Shown here in pieces: positions 22,201 to 27,988 of a DNA stretch of 64,000 nt; positions within the stretch are counted from its first letter, which is position 1, and the number at the start of each line of letters is the position of its first letter. The position numbers and the translations under genes are program-made. The notes beneath the pieces were generated by a model. It worked only from the letters and a program-made list of their open reading frames with translations. It did not search any database and had not been told where the DNA came from. The DNA is from Saccostrea cucullata (Eukaryota): the NCBI RefSeq assembly GCF_032062105.1, contig NW_026931071.1, positions 248,001-312,000 on the forward strand, written 5' to 3'.

Positions 22201-25200
22201 AAGCAAAGTTTAATAAGCCTATCAGAGACTGTAGTTCTTTAAGGGTAATTTTCTTCCTATGCTTTACTTCCTGCAACTTATTTCGTATCTTGACAAGTTT
22301 TGTTTCAGGCAACCGACATTCCAAAACGTGGGAATCTACTTCAATGCCATAAATTGTTAAAATGGTTGTTGGGAAATGGGTTTTTTCTTTTTTAATTGGA
22401 ATACCCGCCTCATTGCATATTGACAGAAACTGTTGCAAATCTAGTAAGCATTTGTTGGAATCTTTTGGACCTATGAAGAAAAAATCATCAAGCATGTGAG
22501 ACATGCCTGCAGCGTCAAATTTTGTGCACATTGCCCATTGTAGACCTTTACTAAGGGATTCGAATATCTGACAAGAGCTGCTAGCTCCCATGGGCAGACA
22601 TTTATCATAATAATAACAACCTTGCCATGAAAAACCAAGAAGTTTGTAATCTTTGGGGTGTATAGGTACGATCCGGAATGCATCCTGAATATCTGTTTTT
22701 GCCATGAGAGAATCCTTACCAAATTGTCTTAACAGGGCTGTGACATTGTCAATTGAATCATACTGAACAGTGGCACACTCTTGGGGGATTTGACTGTTAA
22801 CAGAATTATGTTTTGGAAATGACAAATCGTGTATTACCCTAAATTTCCCTGGTTCAGATTTTGGTACCACTCCCAGGGGTGATGAAACAAAAAATTCAAA
22901 TGGTGGGGATTTAAAGGGACCAGCAATTCTACCTTTCTGTATGCCTTGATCTATAAAATCATCTATGACAGATGGAAAATCGGTTGTACTTTTATGATTC
23001 CTTGAAATTGTTGGAGTTGGAAGACCTATACATCCTAGACTAAATCCCTGTCTAAAACCATCTATCAAAAATTTAAGTTTCTGTGGTTCATAACCCTCTG
23101 AGACTCTATGCAGATTTTTTGGTTTGATGGGTGTTGGGAGCTCTTGAGAAGCTTGATTTTTGAGAATCTGGGCATTTGGATTTGGGGTGGTTTGATTTGC
23201 ACTGCATACAAATGTGTTTATAGGGGCAAGGGTTTCGACTGCATCGTACACCTCTGTTAAATTGGAAACAGAATTTCGTACGAAAGGGATGATTCTGTTG
23301 AGGCTTTGGACCTTGAAATTTTATAGTTGCAGCTTTGAGTCGCAATTCCTGAATGGGGTTTTGCCATGGAACGTTAACTGATTCTCTGAGTTTTCTGAAC
23401 TGCTCATCATATTGTCTAAATGCATGGTCACCGTGCAAGGACTGCACTTCACGGATCATATGGCAGTATTTGAGAAGGTTAGGGGCCTCATCCGGAAATT
23501 TCTCAATAAAGATGGCTGAAAAAATGAGGAAAGCATCAGTCCACTGGCCCAGAGTGATGGGGACTTTGGTTTTTTGACCTTGATGTAAGTTAATGACCCC
23601 AGTAGAAATAGTTACTGAAAGAGGTTCATCTTTTGTGCTAAGTAGTGATTTTAAATCAATATACTCATTGTTCCAAATTTTTTGTTTCAACTTAACAGAC
23701 ACTGAAGCACCTAATGGGATACCATCTTTTACCTCTATAACCTGATTGGATGACCTTGCTGGCTCACCTAAAAACAATTGATCGAGAATTGTTCCAATTC
23801 CAGCTGAAGATGCACTGCCTCCTTGGCCGGTCAGAGATACCTGAGGCTGAGTTGTTGATGTTGTAGCTATTGACTGACTCTGCTGGGATACCATTGATGA
23901 TGTCACCGTGGATGGCTTGTTCACAGACTGTTGTTTTATTACGGCAGCTGCCAACTTGTCATAGTCTATGGAGGGGGTAGCGTTCGACTGTACCGTATTC
24001 ACATTTGCTTCGGCATTTTCAACATTTGTCTCAGCCACCGCAGTAACATCAGCAGTACTTCCCACATTTCGCTTTTTACGAGTTTTCGACGAATTCCCCG
24101 ATGTACCATCTAATTTCCGCTTAGGAGGCATGGTGGTGACCTGAGAAAATTTATGTAATGAAGTAAAATCTGTAAATATCATAAATATGTTTGCAATATA
24201 CACAAGTTATGCATACGAAGTCTGAACAATGCAGCATTATTGTATGCATTAAGTATAATAATGACAACACCTAATGCAGTCAATTGACAGTCAAAATACA
24301 AGACCTGATATTTTGTACAGGTATGATACTTGCATGTCTTGAAAGAAATGACATAAATTAATTGACTACGGTTTTGGTGATTACAATTTCAATGGACAAA
24401 TTGCCCCGAACTTTATATGCAAACAGAGAAGTATGATATTAACCTGCACTTCCCGGAGCCGTACTGCATGATATTCATCTTAAAAGAATGTAAAGTATGA
24501 CAGTATGCATATGCAGCAGCATGAATAATATGGAAATGCATAAAGTTATGAACTTGCATAGAATATGATAAAATGAACTTGCTCTATTTATATAATGTGT
24601 TAGGACCCACATAGAATTTAGAGCAAAGTAGTTAAGGCAAGTGCCCTGATCTGTGAGTGCATTGTTGCTAATGTAAAATGCGCATGGTCTCTCATAGAAT
24701 TTAGATCAAATAATGATAAAATGATATATATCACTTGTGCGATGCTCATAATGACATATGCGTATGGTCCCGCATAGAATTAAGAGCAAATTATAATAAA
24801 ATGAACATACTTATACATAAAATGTTCATGATAAATTATGCGTATGGTCCCGCATAGAAATAAGAGCAACTTATGACAAATGAACATGAACTGTTCACAA
24901 TGTAAAATGCGTATGGTCCCGCATTAAATAGTTAGCTCAAATTATGGCTAAACACAGGATTTGTAACTGCACTGTTCATAGAGTAAAATGCGTATGGTCC
25001 CGCACAGAATTAAAAACAAAATATGACAAGTGCAACCACCTGTTCTATGCCATTCATAATATAAAATGTGTATGGTCCCACATTATATCACTTGTGCGAT
25101 GCTCATAATGACATATGCGTATGGTCCCGCATAGAATTAAGAGCAAATTATAATAAAATGAACATACTTATACATGAAATGTTCATGATAAATTATGCGT

Positions 25201-27988: not shown

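Follow-up and report, generated by a model that had tools for sequence, protein, structure and literature searches.

Psi, the packaging signal of retroviruses, is a structured RNA located between the 5' splice donor and gag, where it is lost from spliced mRNAs and bound by the zinc-knuckle nucleocapsid portion of Gag, while the constitutive transport elements (CTEs) of simple retroviruses and of IAP and MusD are cis-acting, repeated structured RNAs that serve the nuclear exit of intron-retaining retroelement RNA. The alphavirus packaging signal consists of a series of stem-loops tipped with GGG, found in a region that belongs to the genomic but not to the subgenomic RNA (PMC5869531). For the Ngaro group of tyrosine-recombinase retrotransposons, the described architecture is A1-[open reading frames (ORFs)]-B1A2B2, with gag-like, reverse transcriptase and ribonuclease H (RT/RNaseH), and tyrosine recombinase (YR) ORFs, and an extra hydrolase in some elements (PMC7192593; Cafeteria Ngaros, PMC8547959). 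Next to nothing is established on the selection, packaging, and priming of RNA by DIRS and Ngaro elements, and in a study of DIRS-1 even the primer was given as unknown (PMC7192593). Here, a Ngaro element on the minus strand of a 64-kb stretch of Saccostrea cucullata DNA (contig NW_026931071.1, positions 248,001 to 312,000; hereafter the window) was found to carry a cluster of short RNA hairpins ahead of its gag-like ORF, and this cluster is a concrete candidate for a recognition signal of that kind.

On the sense (minus) strand of the element, the motif AUGCG-GGACCAUA-CGCAU recurs as a hairpin with a stem of about 5-9 bp and the 8-nt loop GGACCAUA; read on the plus strand, ATGCG-TATGGTCC-CGCAT is palindrome-like with an asymmetric centre of 8 bp. 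An initial annotation of this DNA, made from the letters alone, had counted about 14-16 recurrences, and fuzzy matching of the 18-mer with at most five mismatches agreed with it, returning 15 units in 24595-25690 and nothing comparable elsewhere in the 64 kb (a five-mismatch match at 24505 was left out of the unit count). The exact 8-mer TATGGTCC occurred 12 times in 24763-25685, compared with three times across the 63 kb outside. Trained on 34 hairpin instances and run with filters off, a covariance model matched the array 13 times at E<=3e-5 and twice weakly, on the minus strand in every case, and its sole match in the window outside the array was weak (position 21045, E=0.11). Successive copies were separated by 80, 80, 69, 81, 78, 49, 80, 69, and 81 nt, mostly 69-81 nt and in line with the spacing reported at first. 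The 357-bp duplication of five units that had been described was also recovered, with 3 mismatches in 358 nt between its halves; discounting the five units copied in this way leaves only about 10 independent ones.

The stem variants listed initially, AUGCG/CGCAU, AUGUG/CACAU, and UUGUG/CACAA, were all present, together with GUGCG/CGCAU, which includes a G-U pair, and the 9-bp form GACUAUGCA/UGUAUAGUU. Pairwise identity among six well-aligned units fell from 92% in the loop to 81% in the stem and 59% elsewhere in the unit. Each unit of about 80 nt includes the conserved hairpin, a second hairpin UGAACA...UGUUCA, and a semi-conserved tail. The semi-conserved flanks of the first description were thus retained, while the "variable core" that they were said to enclose is mostly the loop of this second hairpin. 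Among the 34 instances, which were picked by loop match, GGAC was invariant or nearly so, and the variable loop positions were the last two bases. Single hairpins of the window array had folding energies of -7.8 to -8.8 kcal/mol (z-scores of -3.1 to -3.6), within a range of -7.8 to -13.2 kcal/mol (z-scores between -2.8 and -4.4) for the single hairpins as a whole, and a 431-nt stretch folded with a z-score of -2.2 in the sense orientation (0 of 100 shuffles as good) and of -1.1 in the antisense orientation. No match at E<=1 was returned by Rfam for either strand of 24000-27000 of the window, and a search of metagenome contigs with an exact 16-mer yielded just isolated, scattered matches in unrelated contigs, at chance level for the size of the database.

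Related elements, here referred to by L numbers, were gathered through gag and hydrolase homologues. The GGACCAUA hairpin was found in four other families, in 3-7 copies, on the sense strand only, and between hydrolase and gag. The hydrolases of these families are 51-75% identical to that of the window, and the Gag proteins of three of them 44-65%. Six hairpins were found in L138-L146 (Gag 65% identical to the window), five to six in L131 (Gag 55%), seven in L147 (hydrolase 61%), and three to four in L002 (Gag 44%). The covariance model recovered the hairpins of the relatives at E = 1e-7 to 1e-3 and had zero matches in exons. Between the window and its closest relative, L138, the coding DNA is 74-82% identical, and the blastn alignment of the intron consists of hairpin-adjacent pieces only; the non-coding DNA around the hairpins was mostly unalignable between families. 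Hairpin spacing in the relatives was irregular, at 24-215 nt, and since the hairpins of L002 and L131 are not regular tandem repeats, the motif rather than the repeat unit is what is kept. L147 (9995-13292, also from Saccostrea cucullata) is itself an internally deleted relative, in which the hydrolase and the seven hairpins are retained, the first ~122 Gag residues are fused to the tyrosine recombinase, and RT and RNaseH are absent.

Stem covariation was analyzed over 30 distinct hairpins with a structure of 9 bp and an 8-nt loop. Paired cells made up 76%, compared with 63% in shuffles (0 of 500 shuffles reached 76%), 54 cells were altered on both sides, compared with 24 in shuffles, and the covariation score of 0.443 exceeded both the 0.220 of shuffles and the 0.07-0.18 obtained after sliding the partners. 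Outer stem pairs alternate among A-U, U-A, C-G, and G-C. RNAalifold, one of the checks proposed with the initial annotation, predicted a 6-bp stem de novo, with compensatory changes in five of its six pairs. The inner part of the stem calls for more caution: CpG decay on both strands would convert UGCG/CGCA into UGUG/CACA or UGCA/UGCA without any selection. At the two inner CpGs, CG/CG was observed 16 times, UG/CA six times, and CA/UG four times. Decay alone fails to account for this pattern, because intermediates with a single decayed CpG numbered zero, compared with about 12 expected under independence, and all 10 double changes were compatible with pairing. The claim that selection acts on structure stands on the covariation across five families and less on the window array, in which the changes are mostly CpG-to-TpG/CpA transitions and half of the units are a duplicate. 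Judged from these alignments, the hairpin is very probably an RNA structure under selection.

The position of the hairpins relative to splice sites was consistent across families. Two donors, D1 after the leader and D2 at the hydrolase end, lead to one acceptor located 9 nt upstream of the gag AUG. The donor CAG/GCCAGTA at the hydrolase end (the slash marks the exon boundary) is common to six families, namely the window, L138, L131, L147, L002, and L148. Pairs of spliced and unspliced sequences came from relatives, and the signals of the window were read by correspondence with them. For example, L131 is colinear with the window, with a hydrolase end, 774 nt of non-coding DNA with hairpins, and gag, and L127, whose gag is identical to that of L131, is missing precisely L131 268-1041, from an initial GCCAGT to a final TTCAG. 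Similarly, L001 equals L141 at 100% identity minus L141 150-1706 (GTGAGT...CTAG), which joins the leader to gag. A third 5' exon leads to the same acceptor in eight further contigs (L128-L136), and the spliced contigs contain no hairpin. The segments are removed exactly between cognate sequences, at boundaries that are exactly GT-AG and GC-AG, which shows that splicing happened; the Logan contigs with the spliced structure are presumed to be RNA. The features of a spliceosomal intron, which include a polypyrimidine tract, were found. For each of the six families examined, the hairpins fall within the D2-A intron, and by these signals the array of the window is in all likelihood intronic. Being within a segment removed from both donors, the hairpins would be the only segment unique to the unspliced full-length RNA.

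Reading the two exon ends puts the stop codon of the hydrolase and the start of gag 8-20 nt apart in the spliced form, and splicing takes out at least 14 upstream AUGs, most stems beginning with AUG. Both features suggest that gag is translated from spliced RNAs. A 10-nt string, UUUUCUCAGG, was observed at both donor D2 (25810-25800, minus strand) and the acceptor (24150-24140, minus strand); it was considered as a target duplication and rejected, as the relatives share just AG at these places and a coincidence of splice-site consensus suffices.

Other lineages were found to carry other hairpins in the same intron. L148, whose hydrolase is 67% identical to that of the window, has 7.6 copies of a 39-nt unit (1205-1495) that folds as GAAC..GGGA-AUAUG-UCCC..GUUC. 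In L004, from Saccostrea echinata, an 83-nt unit with two hairpins, both with the loop CNGAGUU, is repeated 6.5 times (9033-9574), and L125 has three UGUCA-UUUANNGU-UGACA hairpins (9447-9620). The GGACCAUA covariance model gave no match to the hairpins of L148, L004, or L125. From these sequences, multi-copy hairpins in the hydrolase-gag intron seem to be general in the clade and to differ in identity from lineage to lineage, and such lineage-specific arrays in one intron favor a co-evolving reader encoded by the element over a single conserved host factor. A candidate reader is present in the element: the C-terminus of Gag has a C-x8-C-x4-C-x3-H finger followed by a C-x2-C-x3-H-x4-C knuckle, and the Cys and His residues of both are invariant in an alignment of nine proteins. 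The finger residues CFQ... and CM[QR]C are common to the four GGACCAUA families and absent in the others, a pattern confounded by phylogeny, and a profile search of PDB with Gag gave a sub-threshold match to the CCCH fingers of MBNL2 (E=0.26).

These observations are tentatively combined in the following explanation. The sense-strand stem-loop cluster would be confined to the unspliced full-length RNA, which has to serve as the template if the element is to stay whole, and the repeated GGACCAUA loops of the cluster would provide a multivalent, high-avidity platform for a protein. The reader would most likely be the element's own Gag, which, through its CCCH and CCHC zinc fingers, may pick the genomic RNA for the particle or ribonucleoprotein and exclude the spliced mRNAs. 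Two properties of a packaging signal were found, namely a segment that belongs to the genomic RNA and is absent from spliced RNA, if the spliced contigs are RNA as presumed, and a structured RNA with a conserved motif and covarying stems. The deletion derivative L147, which still holds the hairpin cluster, was counted toward the same explanation. Multivalent protein binding or packaging, one of the functions proposed at the outset, thus appears to be the best-fitting one for an array in an intron absent from spliced RNAs, and a Gag-mediated multivalent packaging signal is the interpretation preferred here, at a confidence that falls a little short of an even chance. Its extension to the bivalve Ngaros at large, in which unspliced genomic RNA would coexist with spliced gag-pol mRNAs and each lineage would have its own intronic hairpin label read by its own zinc-finger Gag, is possible and is offered more guardedly. 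Three more specific roles of the loop were tried and rejected: UGGUCC, the partner for a long-range pairing with the loop, is found on the sense strand only within coding regions, scattered and without a conserved place; kissing-loop dimerization would require a self-complementary loop, which GGACCAUA is not; and the UGG-containing strand, considered as a tRNA primer-binding site, is the antisense one.

Several observations weigh against packaging by Gag or against parts of the evidence for it. The units of one array are related by duplication, so that the covariation counts overstate the number of independent events, though the direction of the covariation is clear despite this overcounting. 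G-U pairs outnumbered A-C mismatches 19 to 6, an excess no larger than base composition predicts; this asymmetry, considered as a strand test, counts as weak support, and the strand assignment leans mainly on orientation and folding. The Logan contigs could derive from RNA-seq or from genomic reads, have no poly(A) at their ends, and end at coinciding positions, as is typical for assembly-graph breaks inside the A/B repeats. If the spliced forms were genomic copies, spliced RNA would also be reverse-transcribed and the array would not be strictly required; in the genome-assembly loci that extend past the hydrolase (the window, L147, L004, and L125), a small sample, the intron is retained in all. 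A Pfam search with Gag and eight homologues found nothing significant, the best match being a ZAP-like CCCH finger at E=0.22. Additionally, the hydrolase of L148 is nearer to that of the window than are those of three GGACCAUA families, yet L148 has a different hairpin, which indicates that the hairpin pattern is not a simple co-phylogeny. Lastly, the loop is identical across families whose Gag proteins are only 44-65% identical, which fits a conserved host factor equally well.

Binding of a host protein is the main rival to recognition by Gag, and it was judged rather unlikely. The hairpins would then restrain splicing of the intron or, in the manner of a CTE, support the export or stability of the intron-retaining RNA. 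Besides the constancy of the loop against a strongly diverged Gag, this would suit the intronic position of the array in an element that must export unspliced RNA, and D2, a conserved weak GC donor, suggests regulated splicing. The use of different hairpins in the same intron by related lineages of the same host group is less expected from a host factor, and the Rfam search of 24000-27000 included no match to known transport elements.

It is improbable, going by the loop sequence, that the loops form an array of N6-methyladenosine (m6A) sites recruiting readers that decide what becomes of the genomic RNA. GGACC, which fits the DRACH consensus as the initial annotation pointed out, occurs in the loop of nearly all instances, a weak criterion for a degenerate match of 5 nt, and the variation among the 34 loop-selected instances falls outside the DRACH core with its constant GGAC. 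DRACH is nevertheless short and degenerate enough for any GGAC to satisfy it, and the conserved part, which covers GGACCA and the closing G-C pair, is wider. Methylation would also overlap the packaging and host-factor explanations instead of replacing them.

An element that acts as DNA, either as tandem transcription-factor sites of an internal enhancer or promoter or as sites for the tyrosine recombinase, was regarded as highly improbable. Tandem repeats in the non-coding regions of retroelements often serve as promoters, and the inverted arms of 5 bp around an asymmetric core of 8 bp are reminiscent of lox or FRT geometry. The arms vary yet stay complementary (UGCG/CGCA, UGCA/UGCA, UGUG/CACA, UACA/UGUA, and CCUGCG/CGCAGG), and the conserved part is the asymmetric centre, opposite to the pattern expected for a dimeric DNA binder. 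The route into gag in the contigs runs from upstream exons via the acceptor and not from a start in the array, and in the model of Poulter and Goodwin, Ngaro recombination reportedly involves the A/B repeat junctions and not internal sites.

A neutral minisatellite, expanded by chance and with CpG decay mimicking compensatory change, is disfavored as very improbable. The element is CpG-depleted (0.51) with an excess of TG/CA, and most stem variants of the window array are CpG transitions in units of which half are a recent duplicate, as such a history would produce. It does not account for a motif kept in five families, including the non-tandem L002 and L131, amid DNA that is mostly unalignable, for the missing single-decay intermediates, or for outer pairs that covary by transversions. 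Two ideas of the initial annotation, here taken together, an array like clustered regularly interspaced short palindromic repeats (CRISPR) and one that generates small RNAs, in which processing would take place at the hairpins and the spacers would be the guides, were given up as scarcely credible despite the superficial repeat-spacer look and ~80-nt unit, since the spacers are diverged and mutually homologous (~59%) parts of one tandem unit that hold the second hairpin, show no sign of spacer acquisition, and matched nothing in the rest of the window or in related loci, the units range over 33-105 nt in a eukaryotic retrotransposon with no cas genes and are irregularly spaced in the relatives, and the stems (about 5-9 bp, or 4-9 bp at the shortest, as opposed to the ~20 bp or more, or long double-stranded RNA, of microRNA and small interfering RNA precursors) are too short for Dicer- or Drosha-type or any known eukaryotic processing, with nothing else pointing there.

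Table 1. Features of the Ngaro element and its hairpin array in the window (all positions in window coordinates).
Feature	Position	Strand	Evidence and remarks
Stem-loop array, 13 strong and 3 degenerate copies, loop GGACCAUA, ~80-nt units	24591..25694	-	Motif search, covariance model, folding
Recent five-unit tandem duplication inside the array	24727..25441	-	Tandem Repeats Finder: period 357, 2.0 copies, 99% matches
Intron D2-A, 1660 nt	24141..25800	-	Donor CAG/GCCAGUA, GC at 25800-25799; acceptor UUUUCUCAG/ ending at 24141
Complete Ngaro-type tyrosine-recombinase retrotransposon, 7987 bp	18843..26829	-	Split direct repeats; RT, RNaseH, and YR domains
Terminal repeat A1, 224 nt	26606..26829	-	One mismatch to A2
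3' repeats B1 (19507-19886), A2 (19284-19507), and B2 (18843-19222)	18843..19886	-	B1/B2 380 nt, 100% identical
Leader exon end, donor D1 G/GTGAGT, GT at 26508-26507	26509..26605	-	Read directly; L141/L001 homology
SGNH/GDSL hydrolase, first ORF of the element	25791..26474	-	Pfam Lipase_GDSL, E=3e-5
Gag-like ORF, C-terminal CCCH finger and CCHC knuckle	23106..24131	-	Alignment of 9 proteins; ATG 9 nt past the acceptor
RT and RNaseH ORF2, frame change near 22010-21930	21565..23251	-	Pfam RVT_1, RVT_3
Tyrosine recombinase ORF	20660..21568	-	Pfam Phage_integrase, under the curated cut-off

The element that carries the array encodes RT, RNaseH, and a tyrosine recombinase in place of a DDE integrase and has the layout A1-[hydrolase, gag, RT/RNaseH, YR]-B1A2B2, with every ORF on the minus strand, and its assignment to the Ngaro type of the DIRS order was thereby upheld. 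The RT portion spans 23251-22010 and the RNaseH portion 21927-21565, with an RVT_1 match at E=2.5e-9 and a weak RVT_3 match. A Saccostrea cucullata protein matches the hydrolase at 99% identity, the YRs of related elements are 48-64% identical to that of the window, and all relatives of the Gag came from bivalves. Both flanks of the element (26829-27198 and 18643-18843) are contiguous in L147 15516-16096, an uninterrupted copy of a host repeat that is ~70-73% identical to them, and as they join there at L147 15707, the ends of the element are fixed at 18843 and 26829. On this comparison of sequences, the Ngaro is inserted within another repeat family, with no visible target-site duplication at the limited resolution of a reference repeat copy that is ~70% identical. 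The near-identical terminal repeats point to a young insertion. The frame break between RT and RNaseH (22010-21930) adjoins a run of eight T, at a place where the relatives have a single uninterrupted ORF of 533 aa, and this copy is probably non-autonomous despite its near-identical terminal repeats. GC content was 34%, and the observed/expected CpG ratio was 0.75 overall and 0.51 in the element.

A second copy of the 5' part of the element, consisting of A1, the leader, and the hydrolase, was found in Saccostrea cucullata (L137 9580-10592) at 99.7% identity to 26829-25817 of the window. It stops 16 nt before donor D2 and is followed by unrelated sequence and a DUF7869 gene, so that it is truncated or interrupted; as it ends ahead of D2, it is uninformative on the array. 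Together with the hydrolase match and the bivalve relatives of Gag, this copy makes the hooded oyster, or a very close relative, almost certainly the source of the window on sequence grounds. Elsewhere in the window, an ORF of 1369 aa on the plus strand (29103-33212) contains, in this order, a zinc knuckle, aspartic protease, integrase, RT, and RNaseH, which are domains of Ty3/gypsy type in the copia-like order of Gmr1-like elements. Just upstream of it lies a 44-nt tandem repeat of 2.6 copies with 71% matches (28940-29054). A plus-strand ORF of 106 aa (27668-27988) matched the C-terminal third of inosine-uridine nucleoside hydrolase (E=1e-12) and is probably a host exon or gene fragment between the two retroelements.

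In the searchable literature, the coverage of which is incomplete, no report was found of Ngaro splicing, of a hydrolase that precedes gag, or of conserved, clustered hairpins in a Ngaro element, and a cis-acting multi-hairpin signal, as deduced from these sequences, appears to be new for this class of retroelements. If the packaging interpretation holds across these lineages, it would be the first cis-acting signal for genomic-RNA selection defined for any tyrosine-recombinase retrotransposon, and the clade would offer a natural system of interchangeable hairpin-protein pairs, in which the swap of one array for another in the same intron is a natural experiment in the co-evolution of an RNA signal and its reader. 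The 26-nt motif model may also serve as a compact marker when mollusc genomes are annotated for copies of this Ngaro clade that are full-length and of the unspliced type.

Compared with known systems, the array resembles the engineered MS2 and PP7 arrays in its tandem short hairpin, sequence-specific loop, free stem, and proposed multivalent binding; this is an analogy of avidity only, as those arrays are artificial and derived from phage operators. The CTEs known so far bind NXF1 and take the form of long imperfect helices with internal loops, in contrast to the Ngaro hairpins, which are short and have no Rfam match. A closer likeness is to the alphavirus signal, located in nsP1 or nsP2, which also consists of several short stem-loops with a conserved loop motif and variable stems and in which the number of loops matters; the closing G and the loop GG of the Ngaro hairpin also read GGG, as the alphavirus tips do. 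The alphavirus signal differs in that it lies in the coding sequence of an RNA virus and is separated from the shorter RNA by an internal promoter, while the Ngaro array lies in a non-coding intron and is separated by splicing, and the two share no sequence homology. Like Psi, the Ngaro hairpins are located between a 5' splice donor and gag and are removed by splicing, and recognition by Gag is proposed for them. In place of the single compound structure that is Psi, built from a few different stem-loops and often including a dimerization loop, the Ngaro elements have 5-15 copies of one hairpin, and retroviral gag is translated from unspliced RNA, whereas the gag mRNAs of Ngaro appear to be spliced RNAs. 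With these differences, the elements appear to use alternative splicing much as retroviruses do.

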